A stretch of 64,000 bases of DNA from Fonticula alba ATCC 38817 (lineage: Eukaryota > Protista > Nucleariida), in the NCBI GenBank assembly GCA_000388065.2, contig KB932207.1, one strand, 5' to 3'. The notes under the pieces were generated by a model. The model was not told the origin of the DNA and did no database searches. It worked only from the letters and a program-made list of their open reading frames with translations. The translations under genes were made by a program, and so were the position numbers. Shown here piece after piece: positions 1-41,815 of this stretch (position 1 is its first letter; each line of letters opens with the position of its first letter).

Positions 1-3000
1 CAGACGAGGGGGCGCCACTTGGCTCATCCTCCTACAAAGAGGCGCGCAGGCAGACACACACACACACATGCACGTATGTAGGGGGCGCATTCACGCACAG
101 CGAGTCAGATCCCGACACCGGGAGGGGCAGCCAGGGGCAGAAAGAGACGCGGGGGAACCGCAGAAGGGCCAAATGCGAATGGACCAAAGGGCAAGATCGA
201 CAGCCGGGCACGGCTCAGCACGGACCAAATCCTCCGGCAGTTGGGCCTGCAGGGAGCTTTCCACTTCGTAATCGGCCGCGTGGCTGCGCTGCACACGGCT
301 CTCCAACGCCGCGCGGGCCGACTCATGCAGCAAGTCCATCTCGTCACGGATGTGCGCGTCATCCGAGTCCGAGCCGTCGTCCGCCAGGCCCTGGTGCTGG
401 AAGGCAATCAGGCGATGGAGGCGGCTCTTCTCGGCGCCAGGGTCCGAGGCAGCGGCGCCGCGGCCCGGCGCGGGCCGGCTGGTGTCCGAAGCAAACAGCC
501 CGGCCGAGCCGCGTGACGCATCGAACGCCTCGCGTGCCCGGCGCTCGACCTCCTTCATGTCGATGTCGCGGCGTTCTGCGCGCACACGGTGTGTGCGTGT
601 GCCGGGAATGAAAAAAACAAAAAAGAATAAAAGAAAAGAAGGCCCAATCAACGGGGAGACAACGGTCAGAGGGGCAGCGCGCAGAGCAGCATCCAATTAG
701 GGCACCGGCAAACGCACCGTCATCAACGGCATGGGTGCCGGGCCCGGTCCGGGTCGCTGGGAGACTCGGGGGTGCGGGAGCTGGCGCGCCGGCCGGCGGT
801 AGGGCGAACATGCTGCCATGGGGGATCCCCGTACCGAGGTCAGTCACAGATGGCCCGCCCACAAGCAGGCAGCGAGCATTTCTTTCGTTCTTGCTCTCCC
901 TCTCCCTCCCTCTCTATCCCCCCTCTCAGGGTCCGTGAGAAGCACCCGGCGCATGTCACGCACTCGTCATCATCGTCGTCATCTCCCCCCTCACCAAACA
1001 GACCCGGCGCGTCGTCCTCCTCCGAGCCATTGCCCAGTTGGCGCCGGAGGCGACTGACAATGGCGTCATGGTCGGCCGGCTGAGGGGCAGCCTTCTGGGC
1101 AGCCTCCCGCTCAGCAGCCTCCCTCTCGGCAGCAGCAGCAGCAGCAGCAGCGGCGGCGGCGGCGGCCTGTTGTTCCTCCTGGGCACGGCGGGCCGCGCGG
1201 GCTTCCTCCTCCCGGCGACGACGCACCGCGGCCGTCGCCTGCTGCAGGGAGCTGACGCCAAGCTGGCTGCCGGGGCCGCGCGCGCGGCCCCCCTGCTCCG
1301 AGGCCGAGGAGGCGCCCCCGGGAACCGACCCAGACCGGCGGGCGGCCGAAAACAACTGCGACACGCGCTCGATCAGCAGCTCATTGATGCTGTCCAGCGT
1401 CTCGCTCAGGGAGTCGGTGACCAGGTTCGAGCGGACCAGCGACACGGGGACCGCATTCACGTGGTCCCCCCCGGCGTCCTCCTCCTCCTGGGATTGACCA
1501 GGAGCCAGGTTGTACGTGAGGTAGGTCCGCCGGACGCGGTCCTTCGGCAACATGGCGAGGCTGTGGCCAGGGGGCGCACCGGCCGGGAGCCCGGGAGGCG
1601 GAAAGGGCGGAGGCGGTCTTTGGTCAGTCGGCCCCGCGGTCTGACATGGGCACATCATGTGCGCCTTCCAGTGCGCACCTGGAGCCGGTATCCACCCCCG
1701 GGGCCTGTGGGGCTTGCTGCTGTTGCTGCTGCTGGCCGCGCAGGGCCTGTGCCACGATGCGCTGGACGATCGGGTCGGTGGAGGTCTCGGCCGCGGCGCG
1801 CTCCGACGCCCCGAGGGTGCCGTACTTGCGCCGAAGCTTCTCATTCATTTCGCGCTCAGCGGCCTCGCGCTGTGCATCGAGGGCCTTGCGCCTGCGCGGG
1901 CCAGGCCGGACGAGCGGAGGGTTATGGTTGTCAATATGGAATCAGCCAAAGGGGGGGGGGGGGGGNNNNNNNNNNNNNNNNNNNNNNNNNNNNNNNNNNN
2001 NNNNNNNNNNNNNNNNNNNNNNNNNNNNNNNNNNNNNNNNNNNNNNNNNNNNNNNNNNNNNNNNNNNNNNNNNNNNNNNNNNNNNNNNNNNNNNNNNNNN
2101 NNNNNNNNNNNNNNNNNNNNNNNNNNNNNNNNNNNNNNNNNNNNNNNNNNNNNNNNNNNNNNNNNNNNNNNNNNNNNNNNNNNNNNNNNNNNNNNNNNNN
2201 NNNNNNNNNNNNNNNNNNNNNNNNNNNNNNNNNNNNNNNNNNNNNNNNNNNNNNNNNNNNNNNNNNNNNNNNNNNNNNNNNNNNNNNNNNNNNNNNNNNN
2301 NNNNNNNNNNNNNNNNNNNNNNNNNNNNNNNNNNNNNNNNNNNNNNNNNNNNNNNNNNNNNNNNNNNNNNNNNNNNNNNNNNNNNNNNNNNNNNNNNNNN
2401 NNNNNNNNNNNNNNNNNNNNNNNNNNNNNNNNNNNNNNNNNNNNNNNNNNNNNNNNNNNNNNNNNNNNNNNNNNNNNNNNNNNNNNNNNNNNNNNNNNNN
2501 NNNNNNNNNNNNNNNNNNNNNNNNNNNNNNNNNNNNNNNNNNNGGGAAAACGCACTGCCGAGGGGCAGCCGGCTGCTGCCTTTTACCCGATGACGAGGAG
2601 GAGGACGACGACGACCAGTGCCGGGGAGTGGATGCAACCGAGGCCCCAGGGGCCGGAGTGCGTCTGATTGACCGGCCGCCGGAGGGAGGGACAGCTGCGG
2701 GTGTTAGTCGCGCGCGCCGGCGCACAACCGCGAGCGGCGGACAGAGGGGGTCAAGCGCACCGGGCATGTGGCGGGGCCAGGGAGGCCGCCGAGGGGGTCA
2801 TGAGAATTCGGCGGAAGTCATCCTGGCTCAGGCCGCCGGGGGCTCTGCCGTGCCGGGGGGGTCCAGTGGCCGGGGAATGTGCGTCAGCATGGGGGACCAA
2901 AAGAGAAGGGGACAGGGGCAAAACAGGCACGAAGGCTGCGGCGGTGACGAGTGTGCGCGCACTTGGTCTCGGGCACCGCGAAGCCCGATGGGGCCGAGGG

Positions 3001-3051
3001 ATTGGCCGACGGGCCGTCCTTCTTCCCGGGGGCATCGGACGACGAGGACAT
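1..3051 (-). CDS. IK: IK/RED-like spliceosomal protein (SMU1 partner), multi-exon; 3' end runs off the window start
   Basis: Seen: ATG at 3051 (MSSSSDAPGKK), donor GTGCGC at 2962, then an exon encoding LSQDDFRRILMTP (cf. human RED LTNEDFRKLLMTP). Further exons encode RKALDAQREAAEREMNEKLRRKYG and RTYLTYNL...VPVSLVRS...INELLIERVSQLFS (cf. RED IPTTLIRS...TNDIVISKLTQILS). The N-gap 1966-2543 lies inside the gene, so the exon structure is uncertain. Confidence 0.72.
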
Positions 3052-3651
3052 CTTTCGCTCGAGACGTCGGGGCTGGGCGCGCGCGCGCGCGTGTGTGTAC
3101 GTGTGTGCGAATGCGCGAGGAGGGGCCGGAGGTGGCAGGCAGGAGGACGAGTGGGCGGGCAAAGAGGGGCGGGCGGGCGGGCGGGAGGGCGGGCGGGAGG
3201 CGGCGAGATGGAGTTGCTCTGCCCCCTCGGGCCCGCTCCGCAGGGGCCGCCACACGTCTGATGCCCTTCAATCGGGCCGGGCGTGCGGGTGCGTTGGGAC
3301 CTCGGGCGCCGATCGCACGGCCCACCACCGTGGGGCCCGGAGGCGAGGCGCAGGAGGAAGACCGGCGGCGCCCGGGCGGGGCTGGCACAGGTGACAATCT
3401 AGAACCAGATCTAGATCCTCCCAGGCGGCTGGCCGCCCGTCTGCGCACATGCGTGCGCGTGGATGGGCATGCCTTGTGCCGGCCGCCCGGCGGGTCTCGG
3501 TGCGTCGCCCCCACGCGGGCCTCCCCCGCCCCAGCGGAGCCGGCGGCTGATCAGAGCCCCGACCGCCGGGGCCCCGAGCCCTGCTTTGCCTCACTTCTCG
3601 CTGATCCTCCCTGTCGCCTTCCTCTGCCAGCCACCTCTCCTTGGCGCGCTC

Positions 3652-3785
<134 letters not shown>

Positions 3786-3824
3786 GCACCCCACCCCCTC
3801 CTGCAAGTGACCGACTGGACTAGC

Positions 3825-5242
3825 ATGGTCGACCCGGCTACCATCTCGCCGGCACGCTGCGCCGGTGGCCCAGCCCGCGTGCTGGTCATCGACAGCCACG
3901 ACTCCAACACCCAGAACCTGGTGGACATCCTCCGAGGCGCCCTACCGGCGGGGTCGGCGGTGGTGGTGGTGCCGGCAGACGCCACGACGGCCACGGCGGC
4001 CGAGGTGCTGGCGTGCCTCGGCGTCGGGCAGTGCCCCTGCCAGCAGCCGGCCACCAGCGGCCGGTGCATTGATGCGATCTTCCTGTCCAATGGGTCGGGC
4101 CATGGCGGCGGCCTGTCCCCCGGGGGCCTGGTGTCGCTGGTGACGCGGGCCGCCATGCCGCGGGCTGACTGGCCCCCGGGGCCGGACCCGGTGGGGGCGG
4201 CCCTGGCGCGTCTGGTCCCCGAGGAGGCCCTCGGCCCCGGGGCCGGGCGGCTCCTCGACCAGCCGGTCTTCGGCATCGGCCTGGCCTTCCACCATCTTGC
4301 TCACCAGTATGGGCTGCCGTTGCGGAATGACGCGCCGCCGATGCACGGTCTCACGGCCGAGGTGGCCTTCGGCCCGGGGCGCCTGGACCCCGGCGACCCG
4401 GGAGCCGGGGTCTTCCTGCCGGCCGGCCGGCGAGGCTCGGCGGACTTTGTCAATCCGCCTCCCTGGGCCGATGGCCCGGGTGGCGGCTTTGGTGGCAATG
4501 TCACCGGGCCGGATGCCGCCCCCTCCCCGGTCACGGTCATGACCTACCAGTCGTACTTCGTGGATGTCCCGGCCGCCGGGCACCCTCTCCGCGCGGTGGG
4601 TGTTTACCGGGCCCCTCTGGACCGGGTGGCCGCGGTCAAGCACCATGCGGTCCCCCTCTTCGGCGTGCAGTTCCAGCCTGACGTATGTCCTCTTCTTCTT
4701 CTCCTCCTCCTCCTCCTCCCTCCTCGCGCCCTGACCCCGGTCGTGCCGACGAATCGCGATCCGAACGCACGGGCGCCGGCCTGTTCGCCTGCTGGCCTGC
4801 CTGTCCGCCCGGGCATCCGCTCACCCGTCCGCCCGTCCGAACCCCACCCGCATGCGTGTGGCACCAGTCGGTTGGCACAACCGGCGGCGCCGACATGATC
4901 CTCAACTTTCTGAGGCTGTACCTGCCCGCGCGGCAGCGTGAGCGCACGTCGCTGGCCTTCTGTCGACTGGACGCGCTGGTCGCAGCCCCGGCCCCGGCCC
5001 CGGCCCCGGCTTCATCCCCGCTGGACCTGCAGTGCCGGTGGCTGCGCCTGCGCCCGGGCGTCGACAGCCCGGCCTGCCTGACCAGCGAGCTGGTGTTCGA
5101 CCTGCTGTACGCCGATGCGCCGTCAGCCGTGTGGCTGGATTCGAACATGGTGCGCGCCATGGCTCCCTCGCTCCCCCCTCCCCTTTGCCCCTCTGCGCCC
5201 GGGCAGCCCTCGGTCCCGGCCGCCGGGCACTCTTGCGCGCCA

Positions 5243-5286
<44 letters not shown>

Positions 5287-5944
5287 CCACGACTGACCCG
5301 CGGTGCACCCGGCGCTCGAAACAGTTCCAGCCCCCGGCCCTCGGGCGCTTTTCCTTCATGGCGTCCGCCACGTCGGCCCTACATGCAGGTCCCCTGAGCC
5401 ACCGGGTGTCCTTCCGCCTGGCGGATGGCCATGTGGCGGTGACCGGCCTCCGGGGCCCGCTGGTGGAGGAGCGTCTGCTGTGCCCTTCGCAACTGCGCCA
5501 GGCCCGGGCCACCGGCGCCCAGGGTGCCGATCGGCTGCTGGCCCTGCCGGCCGGGTGGGACTTGTACGCCTGGCTCGGGGCCCACCTGGACCGGGTGCGG
5601 GTGTCCTCCTTCCTGGAGCATGGCCAGCCGGCTGGCCAAGCGTCCCGCACCGCGGCCAGCCCGCTGCCCTTCAACTTTGTCGGTGGCCTACTTGGGTACC
5701 TGGGCTACGAGCTGGGCAACTCGGTGGTCGGGCTGCCGGCGGCGGCGGGCCCGGACCCGGGGACCGGGCACTGTCTCCCGGTGTCGCCGGCCCTGCCGGA
5801 CGGGGACCTGGTCTTCGTCGACCGGTTCCTGGCCTTCGACCATGTGGATCGCAGCATCTACATTGTGGAGCTGGTGCCCGAGGTGTGTGGGCCCGCCGAG
5901 CCGGCTGGCCGGGCCTGCTGGCTGGACATGGTGGCCGGCATGCT

Positions 5945-5977
<33 letters not shown>

Positions 5978-6671
5978 TGGTGGAAGCCCGCGGGTGGCGG
6001 GCGACTTCGAGGCGCAGGCCGGCCGGCGGCTTGGGACGGCTGCCCTGGCGGCGGATCGCCTGCTCGCGCGCGACCTCGCCGGGCTGATGGCGCAGGTGCC
6101 GGCCGACGCGCGGACCCTGGCGCTGCCGGTGGCCGGGGCCGAGCCGCGGCCGGCGGCCGTCCTGGAGCTGGCCCGATCCCGGGCCGAGTACCTGGCCGAT
6201 GTGCGCTTCATCCAGGACCTCATCGCCACCGGGGAGGTGTACCAGATTTGCGCGACCACGCAGCTGGGCCTGACCGGGGCCCGGCTGCTGGGGCCCGGGC
6301 CGGACGGCCGGGATCGCCTGGCCGCGGCGTATCGGCAACTGCGTGCCGTCTCCGGCTCGACGTACGGGTCGCTGTTGCGCCTGGATCCCGGGGTTGCGGT
6401 GCTGTCCTTCTCGCCGGAGCGCTTCCTGCAAGTGGACCCGGCCGGGCAGGTGGTATGCCGGCCGATCAAGGGGACGGCCCCGCGCGGACGCACCCCGGCC
6501 GAAGACCGGGCCCTGGCCACCGGGCTCCTGGCGTCGGTGAAGGATCGCGCGGAGAATGTCATCATCGCGGACCTGGTGCGCGGGGACCTGGCTCCGATCA
6601 GCCGGCCCGGGTCGGTTCGGATGTTGGGCAGCCGGCCCGGGCCGCCGCCCGTGGCCTCGCCATGCGCCCCC

Positions 6672-6714
<43 letters not shown>

Positions 6715-7247
6715 ATGTGGCCCCGGGCGAGGGGAGCTGGCTGCGTGTGGACCAGACGGCGCACGTGCACCAGCTTCTGTCGGTCATCGGCGCGCAAGTG
6801 GCCTCGGGCCGGGCGCTGGACGCGGTGCGGAGCTGCTCGCCGCCCGGGTCCATGACCGGGGCCCCCAAGCGCCGGGCAGTGGAGTACCTGTCGGGCCGAG
6901 TGCCGGGGGCGGCGCGGCCGCTGGAGGGCCGCCAGCCGCGGGGCATCTACTCCGGGGCCATCGGGTACCTGGGCCTGCGGACAGCCGAGCCGGGGGCCGT
7001 GGAGCCGGTGGACCTGTCGGTGGTCATCCGGTCGGCGGTGGTGATGGCCGCCGAGGGCGGTCCCTCGGAGACCCGGGCTGCCGGCGCCCCGGGCCCGGCC
7101 GATCGCCTGTGGCTCGGGGCCGGCGGCGCCGTGACGGCCCTCTCCTCGCCGGAGGACGAATTCCACGAGGCCATGCTGAAGGCGGCTTCCGTGCTGGCCG
7201 GGATCCTGGCCCTCCAGCCGCGGGAGGTGTTCTTCCCGGTGCCCTAG
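3825..7247 (+). CDS. ABZ1: Fused PabA-PabB 4-amino-4-deoxychorismate synthase (ABZ1-like); exons 3825-4682, 4868-5149, 5325-7247; GATase domain degenerate
   Basis: Seen: N-terminal RVLVIDSHDSNTQNL (class I GATase start), MHG and GVQFQPD|S. The C-terminal chorismate-binding domain has WLDS, GRFSFM, GGLLGYLGYEL, SPERFL, PIKGT (6462-6476; the Lys is PabB-type, versus PIAGT in TrpE), KDRAEN, GSMTGAPK, RGIYSGAIGY and GAGG...EDEFHEAMLKA. The introns (GTATGT..CAG, GTGCGC..CAG) join in frame. Confidence 0.92.
5243..5288 (+). repeat. (CCTG)n microsatellite in ADC synthase intron 2
   Basis: Seen: about 11 tandem CCTG units directly before the CTGAC branch point. Confidence 0.9.
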
Positions 7248-7454
7248 GCGCCGCCGTCGCCGTGACGCCCTGCCTGGTGTCCGCCCCCCCCCNNNNNNNN
7301 NNNNNNNNNNNNNNNNNNNNNNNNNNNNNNNNNNNNNNNNNNNNNNNCCCCCCCCGATCCTGTGTCACAGAGACAGGGGACGAGAGAGGGGGAGGGAGCG
7401 AGAGCAGTGGCCCAGCTAACCAGTTGGCAGCCTCTCGTGGCACATGCCCGGCCC

Positions 7455-16342: not shown

Positions 16343-16402
<60 letters not shown>

Positions 16403-18009
16403 AGATGGAAAGGGGCGCGGAGGAGGCGAAGGAGCGAGGCTGACGGGACACGCGCGGCGCGCCACGTACCACGGGTCACATCCCAGGATGGATCAAATTC
16501 ATGCTTGGGCTGCAGCGTCGAGTTGAAGGTGCTCAGGATGTCGGCCGCGAGGCCGGCACTCGGGGCCAGCAAGTGGAGCAAGTCGGCGGCCGAGTGGTCC
16601 GACAGCACGGGGCTCGAGAAGCTGGACCCCAGCAAGGCCACCCCGAGCTTCGGCCAGTGGACCCCGAACATGGGGACCGTCGGAGTGGCCACCCGCAAGC
16701 GCACGGTGTCCTGCATGCGGAGGGTACCCTGGTATGGGATGAGCAGGCGGGTGCATGTGTGTGTGTGTGTGTGTGTGTGTTTGTGTGACCGAGAGTCTCA
16801 GAGTGTGAGCTTGATGGAGCCCCGAGAAGAAAGGGAGAGGCGAGGGAGAAGGAGGCGAGCCACCCGGGCACGCACCTTGACGAAGGCCCGGTCACTGGTC
16901 CGGTCGCTGGCCCAGTCATCCGGGTGCCGCGTCTCCAGCGACAGGACCATGGTCCCATTGCGGAAGGCCCAGGTGCTTGGATGAGAGCCGCGCAAGCGCG
17001 GAGGGCCGGCCCCGGCCCCGGCCCCGGCCCCGGCCCCGGGGCTCGGCGGGACGGCGCCCGTCTCGCCCGGTCCCGCCGACGGACTCGGCACCGGGGCCGG
17101 CTCCTCGCCCGGACCCCGGCCAGGCACCAAAGGCTGGGTCAAGTTCAGCGGAGCCATCCACCCCCCGGTGAAGGGCCACCCGGCCAGGATATCCGGGTTG
17201 GTGGCATTGATCGGATGATCGCTGGGCTTGGAGGTGAACAGGACCGACCGATCGACCAGGCTCGCCGGCGCGTGCCAGTCCGCCTGGATGATGGCCGTGA
17301 TGTTTGGCGGGAAGATGGTCCCCGCCCCGGCGACCGTGGCCCCGGGAGCAGGCCCCGGCTGTGGCGGAACCCCCTCGGCCGGGGCCAGCCGCGCGGCCGC
17401 CAGGCCCGAGGTGGCGTCCGTGGATGCCGGATCGCCCGCCGGCCTGCCGGGCCACTGGGGAACATGCTCATGCAGGAGATCCTGTACGAAATCCCGCAAC
17501 CCCGCCGGGAAGAGACGCTCGCGCGTGGCATACTCCAGCGCCGGCATGCTGTTGGCCGGCTGCCGGCTGCGCGCCGGCGGGGCCGACCGGAACCGCACAT
17601 ACCGGCCAAATTGATCCGGTCGGCGGAGGACATCGGCTGGCTGGAACCCCGGCGCATAGCGCTGGCGATACTTCACCAGGAAGGAGAACGGATCAAACGC
17701 CGGCTCCGGCAGGCTTTCCGGGGCGTCGCCATTGGCCATGGCGCTCACGGCCAGGGCAGCGCCACTGGAAGCCGGCGACTCGGAGCCAGGGCTCCCCCGG
17801 GCCGGAGCCGGCGGCTGGGGCGACACATCGACCGAAGCCCACCCGGGGGCCAACAACGACACCAGCAGCAGCAGGACCCCGAGCAGCGGGAGGAAATGGG
17901 CCCCAGACGGCCGGCGATTGGGACGCCGCCGCCGGCGGCCCAGTCGCCCGGGCACCACCGACATCATTCCCGCGAGAGGCGGCCCCACGCCGGGGGGGCG
18001 GGTCGGCAT
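14221..18009 (-). CDS. TUL1: Transmembrane RING-H2 E3 ubiquitin ligase, Tul1/Dsc1 family; multi-exon; start at 18009 or 17967
   Basis: Seen: signal-like FLPLLGVLLLLVSLLAPGWA, a lumenal region, several TM exons (SRVSLHMIWLQAALD; LLFALVTFVKLCQFLFFGV; YALVFHSFLFPQI), and C-terminal CGIC...MLTPCNHIFHQACLEQ|WLDIKLVCPVCRAVLP, stop at 14221. Confidence 0.85.

Positions 18010-41749: not shown

Positions 41750-41815
<66 letters not shown>

Follow-up and report, generated by a model that had tools for sequence, protein, structure and literature searches.

The window, a 64,000-nucleotide stretch of contig KB932207.1 from Fonticula alba ATCC 38817 (assembly GCA_000388065.2), a slime-mould-like organism related to the fungi, carries a three-exon gene in which a PabA/TrpG-type class I glutaminase (GATase) half is fused to a PabB-type aminodeoxychorismate (ADC) synthase half (Table 1). 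About 1020 codons stay open over its two canonical phase-0 GT..AG introns, and the joints created by splicing can be read against related proteins. The GTATGT donor of intron 1 directly follows the GAC codon (Asp) at 4680-4682, and exon 2 opens with the residue that corresponds to the Ser of HPES, after which comes VGTTGGADMILNFL; removal of this intron joins ...FQPD to SVGTTGGADMILNFL, collinear with HPES...LL.NF in intact fusions. Similarly, removal of intron 2 joins WLDSNM to FQPPALGRFSFMAS, with the same spacing as WLDS...RFSxMG in relatives. Open reading frames arise cheaply in DNA of 73% GC, and the window is eukaryotic DNA of about 70% GC. By codon position, the GC content of exon 1 is 0.78/0.56/0.87, a coding pattern that matches that of exon 3 (0.79/0.58/0.90); intron 1 gives 0.79/0.63/0.69, and the introns are flat. 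Coding-type GC periodicity is present in all three exons.

Table 1. Coordinates of the PabA-PabB fusion gene in the window, with the active-site positions of its two halves
Feature	Position	Strand	Remarks
PabA-PabB fusion gene	3825-4682, 4868-5149, 5325-7247	+	three exons, start ATG at 3825
Exon 1, predicted pseudo-glutaminase, remnant of a class I GATase (PabA/TrpG-type)	3825..4682	+	286 codons
SNGSG in place of the SPGPG oxyanion loop	4086..4100	+	P89N, P91S; G90 and G92 invariant: both Pro lost, both Gly kept
Gly codon GGC replacing the nucleophilic Cys (C79 of E. coli PabA)	4278..4280	+	context PVFGIGLAFHH
TYQS in place of RYHS (region of PabA glutamine-binding Y127/H128)	4542..4553	+	R240T, H242Q
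CAG-CCT-GAC (Gln-Pro-Asp) in place of His-Pro-Glu (PabA H168, E170)	4674..4682	+	H284Q, E286D
Intron 1, phase 0, GTATGT...CAG	4683..4867	+	acceptor AG 4866-4867
Exon 2, final GATase-fold helix, linker and start of the synthase half (..AVWLDSNM)	4868..5149	+	94 codons
Intron 2, phase 0, GTGCGC...ACAG	5150..5324	+	
Exon 3, PabB-type ADC synthase half, with poly-Gly and poly-Ala insertions	5325..7247	+	640 codons + TAG
PIKGT	6462..6476	+	catalytic Lys codon AAG 6468-6470 (E. coli PabB K274)
KDRAEN	6540..6557	+	Glu codon 6552-6554 (PabB E258 region)
SMTGAPK, motif of the chorismate-binding fold	6849..6869	+	aligned to 8hx6 and 1k0e

Several features of the surrounding and inserted sequence can be recorded alongside the gene. 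Exon 1 has two long insertions, at about residues 93-135 and 200-230, which are disordered in the AF2 model, and the codon-position GC of the second (4371-4526) is flatter. In-frame hidden introns were sought in both of them; no usable GT..AG pair could be found by eye, so that the idea was dropped and the stretch at 4371-4526 is treated here as a low-complexity insertion. Within the PabB half, in-frame poly-Gly (GGC repeats, 5940-5975) and poly-Ala (GCG repeats, 6675-6713) lie between conserved blocks. A near-pure C tract of 135 nt (3653-3787) ends 38 nt upstream of the start codon, and further homopolymer-like C or G tracts of 60-65 nt are found at 16344-16403 and 41751-41815; these tracts may represent a kind of promoter or 5'-UTR element that is usual in the Fonticula alba genome. 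Assembly gaps lie on either side of the gene, at 1966-2543 and 7293-7347.

All searches, alignments and fold predictions were run on the separate exons rather than on the joined protein, and the scores are to be read with that in mind. Against the Pfam GATase family PF00117, exon 1 scores 25.9 bits (cut-off 22.8) in a match that covers only its N-terminal third, and against TIGR00566 (trpG_papA) it scores 37.9 bits, below the cut-off of 121. A language-model search places it among PabA/TrpG clusters (0.94). Predicted by AF2 from a single sequence, exon 1 has a pLDDT of only 36.6; when an alignment with intact fusions (described below) is supplied, the model reaches a pTM of 0.72 with core segments at pLDDT 80-89, and a search with its fold ranks E. 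coli PabA first (8rp2_B; TM 0.77, E 5.5e-12). Since the input alignment consists of intact homologues, the model leans toward the GATase fold, and what it shows is compatibility with that fold rather than proof of folding.

The functional residues of this domain are well described in E. coli PabA, which has the triad C79/H168/E170, an oxyanion hole formed by G52/L80 and the glutamine-binding residues Y127/H128, and in which C79, H168 and E170 are each essential (PMC7617670). The original prediction had claimed that the fusion has lost all three catalytic residues, together with changes at the oxyanion loop and the RYHS motif, and the codons of SNGSG, the Gly, TYQS, the Gln and the Asp are exactly where it put them. 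The residue equivalences behind that claim were checked in three ways: a MAFFT alignment against 5 intact fusions; a phmmer comparison with the solved ADC-synthase glutaminase 6qur, in which giGl aligns to gvCl and fQpD to fHpE; and a larger alignment of 26 sequences, comprising the window protein and 25 intact fusions. The whole Cys-His-Glu triad is absent (C152G, H284Q, E286D), and at the nucleophile elbow the larger alignment shows not only C152G but also G154A, H155F and Q156H.

The larger alignment also shows where the substitutions fall. Near-invariant columns, defined by conservation in 23 or more of the 25 intact fusions, number 43; the window protein keeps 27 of them and has changed 16, namely the ten substitutions named here and in Table 1 and six more. 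C152, H284, E286, G154, Q156, R240, H242, P89 and P91 are all near-invariant and all changed. The kept columns include D23, D26, S27, T29, N31, L32, S88, G90, G92 and P147, as well as G150, L153, H174, G175, Y241, S243, G280, Q282, F283 and P285. The changed columns thus cluster at the active site, and the kept ones lie outside the catalytic and glutamine-binding positions. Lacking the Cys nucleophile, the His base and the Glu, the domain could not form the glutamyl-thioester, and as read from its residues the glutaminase half is a pseudo-enzyme for which the canonical thioester mechanism would be impossible. Sequencing error as the cause of the substitutions is ruled out, because 16 conserved columns are changed and because the same Cys to Gly change occurs in another gene of this genome, that of the CAD-type carbamoyl phosphate synthetase (CPSase) discussed below.

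In the case of the synthase half, the catalytic equipment is in place. Exon 3 scores 164.3 bits against the chorismate-binding family PF00425 (cut-off 27). Its scores against TIGR00553 (pabB; 195 bits, cut-off 328) and TIGR01823 (PabB-fungal; 172 bits, cut-off 443) are below the cut-offs, which is not decisive, since the exons were scored separately and the insertions break the match. In an alignment with E. coli PabB (1k0e) and with 8hx6, a fused ADC synthase from Streptomyces, exon 3 has PIKGT, KDRAEN, HxLxS, SMTGAPK, RGxYSGxxGY, IR and GGA...E..E...K all in position, which bears out the motifs first noted for this half (PIKGT, KDRAEN, H-x-L-x-S, TGAPK, IR and E..E...K). The Lys of PIKGT is essential in Coprinopsis Pab1, where its change to Glu results in pABA auxotrophy (PMC7552465). 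Judged by its residues, then, the PabB half is shown to keep all its catalytic motifs, with a synthase active site that appears intact.

Neither half has a close counterpart in public protein sets. A word search with exon 1, over a length range of 157-500 aa, returned nothing at E<=0.001; the word search with exon 3 was restricted to residues 265-440. An exhaustive HMMER search of 1.84 billion representatives found 13,323 relatives of the synthase half, none of them close (best 184 bits, 45% identity). No identical or near-identical protein for 3825-7247 was returned by either the word or the exhaustive HMMER search, and public protein sets therefore seem either to lack the gene or to carry a faulty model of it. 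The named top matches are ADC synthases of chytrids (Polychytrium, Rhizophlyctis) and of Chlorokybus, and for this reason the findings fit vertical descent of the sequence in the fungal-sister lineage. The cluster of another top match includes an MMETSP transcript.

Among the 134 retrieved relatives that have a glutaminase half, 123 have the Cys, His and Glu. The other 11 show gaps at some triad columns; 10 of these look N-terminally truncated, and the remaining one, P0157, loses its alignment ahead of the His and Glu columns. Not one of the 123 related fusions with readable triad columns has a triad substitution, which, together with the 16 changed columns, upholds the earlier view that the changes are unlikely to be sequencing errors. 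Half-by-half profiles built from 113 complete intact fusions give a similar picture. The glutaminase half of the window protein scores 52 bits (intact fusions: median 276, minimum 175), and its synthase half scores 343 bits (median 624, minimum 424), so that the ratio of the two is 0.145, as against 0.31-0.51 in the intact fusions (n=113 throughout). In control pairs from a chytrid, an alga and an actinobacterium, the glutaminase half is conserved at least as well as the synthase half. The synthase half of the window protein itself scores below all 113 intact fusions.

It had been proposed that a glutaminase might be borrowed in trans, for instance the small subunit of anthranilate synthase, and a search of the genome for a second, intact PabA or TrpG had been suggested. 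More broadly, ammonia could be delivered by any active glutaminase acting in trans, whether this is a PabA/TrpG encoded on its own or some other amidotransferase, the dead domain then serving as a docking adaptor. There is precedent for such sharing, as in B. subtilis and similar bacteria one glutaminase is common to the anthranilate and ADC synthases. Moreover, PabA and PabB of E. coli function as separable subunits (PMC7617670). The genome of Fonticula alba argues against it. In the 31.3 Mb assembly (214 contigs), no TrpG/PabA-type sequence was detected, and the fusion gene is the sole chorismate-binding (PF00425) locus, which leaves the genome without TrpE or isochorismate synthase. A glutaminase from anthranilate synthase was rejected on these grounds, neither TrpG nor TrpE being found. 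A genome search with PF00117 matched only CTP synthase and the CAD-type CPSase, and of the class I glutaminases found, the one that is intact is a covalent part of CTP synthase. In addition, the fused dead domain would occupy the very face at which a partner would dock. We therefore consider supply in trans barely credible.

It can also be envisioned that the protein has changed its job, in that the dead domain senses glutamine or glutamate, or the PabB-like half uses another nucleophile or substrate so that its product is not ADC. A glutamine sensor is disfavored because the glutamine-binding residues themselves (Q156, H242, R240) are lost, and for the synthase half the ADC-synthase signature PIKGT is kept with its Lys. 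A change of function of either kind seems quite improbable to us.

As to the rest of the pathway, chorismate synthase is present in the genome, and HPPK is immediately followed by a pterin-binding domain, so that the two can be taken as a Fol1-type HPPK-DHPS gene. HPPK-DHPS requires pABA. Transcripts of folB/K/P have been reported for Fonticula alba (PMC4224340). ADC lyase was not found in the genome, where TIGR03461 returns nothing. Two class IV aminotransferase loci, both on C12 at about 135 kb and 143 kb, were considered as candidates for it and set aside, both being BCAT.

The other amidotransferases of the genome put the pABA synthase in a wider context. The glutaminase of CTP synthase is intact (GICLGMQ...FHPE). 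The CAD-type CPSase (C1:852061-852892, minus strand) reads PVFGIGLGHH and so shares the Cys to Gly change of the pABA synthase; its FHPE is retained, and its best alignment is with the ammonia-dependent human CPS1. In the GMP synthase (C6:2315500-2320500, minus strand, about 2011-3162), whose ATP-PPase and C-terminal parts are readily made out, the N-terminal glutaminase half is barely recognisable, with PVMLLGTGACQ where PVLGICYGMQ is expected and YGFDVDNF where YGVQFHPE is expected; this half went undetected by PF00117 in the genome-wide search. Decay of the glutaminase half of GMP synthase is probable from these remnants, and only probable because HMMER cannot align through the motifs. Pdx1/Pdx2 and PurL (FGAM synthase), checked as further examples of a dead glutaminase, are absent from the genome. 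Thus, of the four class I amidotransferases that could be detected, three appear to lack the nucleophile, GMP synthase probably so, while their synthase parts persist. Since CTP synthase is intact, the loss looks selective rather than general, and a selective shift fits the pattern of three lost and one intact better than general decay does.

The strongest case against an active enzyme is that the gene itself is decaying: the organism would take folate or pABA from its bacterial prey, the glutaminase half would be the first part to decay, and the enzyme would be non-functional or nearly so. This would account for the lack of a detectable ADC lyase, for a synthase half that scores lower than all 113 intact fusions and carries poly-Gly and poly-Ala insertions, and for the absence of the gene from public protein sets in both the word and the exhaustive searches; moreover, other biosynthetic genes are missing from the genome as well (TrpE/TrpG, PurL, Pdx1/Pdx2). 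A decaying gene would not be expected, however, to keep some 1020 codons open over two canonical phase-0 introns, with coding-type GC periodicity across three exons and every catalytic motif of the synthase half in place, or to lose active-site positions of the dead domain while holding on to its fold positions. Nor does decay sit easily with the retention of chorismate synthase and of the pABA-requiring HPPK-DHPS, or with a CAD that shows the same selective loss at the glutaminase site next to an intact synthase. On balance, we regard decay as unlikely, though it is the rival that deserves most attention.

The reading that we favor, and consider reasonably probable, is that of an ammonia-dependent ADC synthase which keeps a pseudo-glutaminase as a scaffold and which is part of a genome-wide shift. 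The gene, to judge from its sequence, would be translated as a eukaryote-type PabA-PabB ADC synthase, and its PabB half would most likely convert chorismate and free ammonia to 4-amino-4-deoxychorismate. E. coli PabB alone is known to use ammonia in this way and needs it at a high level. The dead domain may be retained in folded form, serving the synthase half as a scaffold or interface, as in CPS1, and is perhaps the mouth of the old ammonia tunnel. A link to an ammonia-rich, bacterivorous lifestyle can be suggested; by way of speculation, ammonia should be plentiful in a bacterivore that breaks down amino acids. Both ammonia use and the scaffold gain weight from the Cys to Gly change in the CAD-type CPSase and from the decayed glutaminase half of GMP synthase. 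Weighing against an ammonia-dependent ADC synthase are the missing ADC lyase, the low score of the synthase half and the low-complexity insertions. A more far-reaching proposal is that nitrogen transfer has been rewired across the genome, such that pABA synthase, the CAD-type CPSase and GMP synthase all run on free ammonia, each retaining its pseudo-glutaminase domain as a scaffold, and CTP synthase alone depends on glutamine; this we put forward tentatively, at somewhat short of an even chance.

Glutamine amidotransferases are the textbook example of enzymes with channelled ammonia, and dead but retained glutaminase halves are, to our knowledge, rare in nature, CPS1 being the classic case. 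A dead glutaminase in an ammonia-using amidotransferase is thus already known from CPS1, and what would be new here is its occurrence in an ADC synthase, for which the 123 relatives offer no second example and the literature searched contains no report. If the genome-wide reading is true, it would be the first ADC synthase that relies on ammonia only and carries a dead glutaminase fused to it. If the enzyme is active, folate synthesis would depend on the intracellular level of ammonia, and the protein would allow the structural contribution of a glutaminase domain to PabB to be examined in a natural experiment. The main interest seems to lie in the genome-wide pattern shared with CAD and GMP synthase, which points to a shift in nitrogen economy at the level of the organism, in a bacterivorous sister lineage of the fungi.

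Of the known systems, the eukaryotic bifunctional ADC synthases (yeast Abz1, Coprinopsis Pab1, plant ADCS; TIGR01823) are the nearest in design, with the same order of an N-terminal PabA-type GATase fused to PabB and with the synthase motifs, including the Lys of PIKGT, in common. The window protein differs from them in having other residues at every triad position and at the adjoining glutamine-binding positions, and in the two long disordered insertions of its GATase and the low-complexity insertions of its synthase. Compared with the E. coli PabA/PabB heterodimer, the predicted fold of exon 1 is nearest to PabA (8rp2_B) and exon 3 aligns with PabB (1k0e), but here the two are fused and the equivalents of C79, H168 and E170 are missing. 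Vertebrate CPS1 keeps an inactive glutaminase-like domain, in which the Cys has become Ser, and takes up external ammonia (PMC4655335). As in CPS1, a class I glutaminase domain that has lost its nucleophilic Cys is kept in frame with an intact synthase; the synthase is of a different family, however, and ammonia use by the window protein is putative. Moreover, CPS1 changes only the Cys and keeps its His and Glu, whereas the window protein has parted with the whole triad and with the glutamine pocket.
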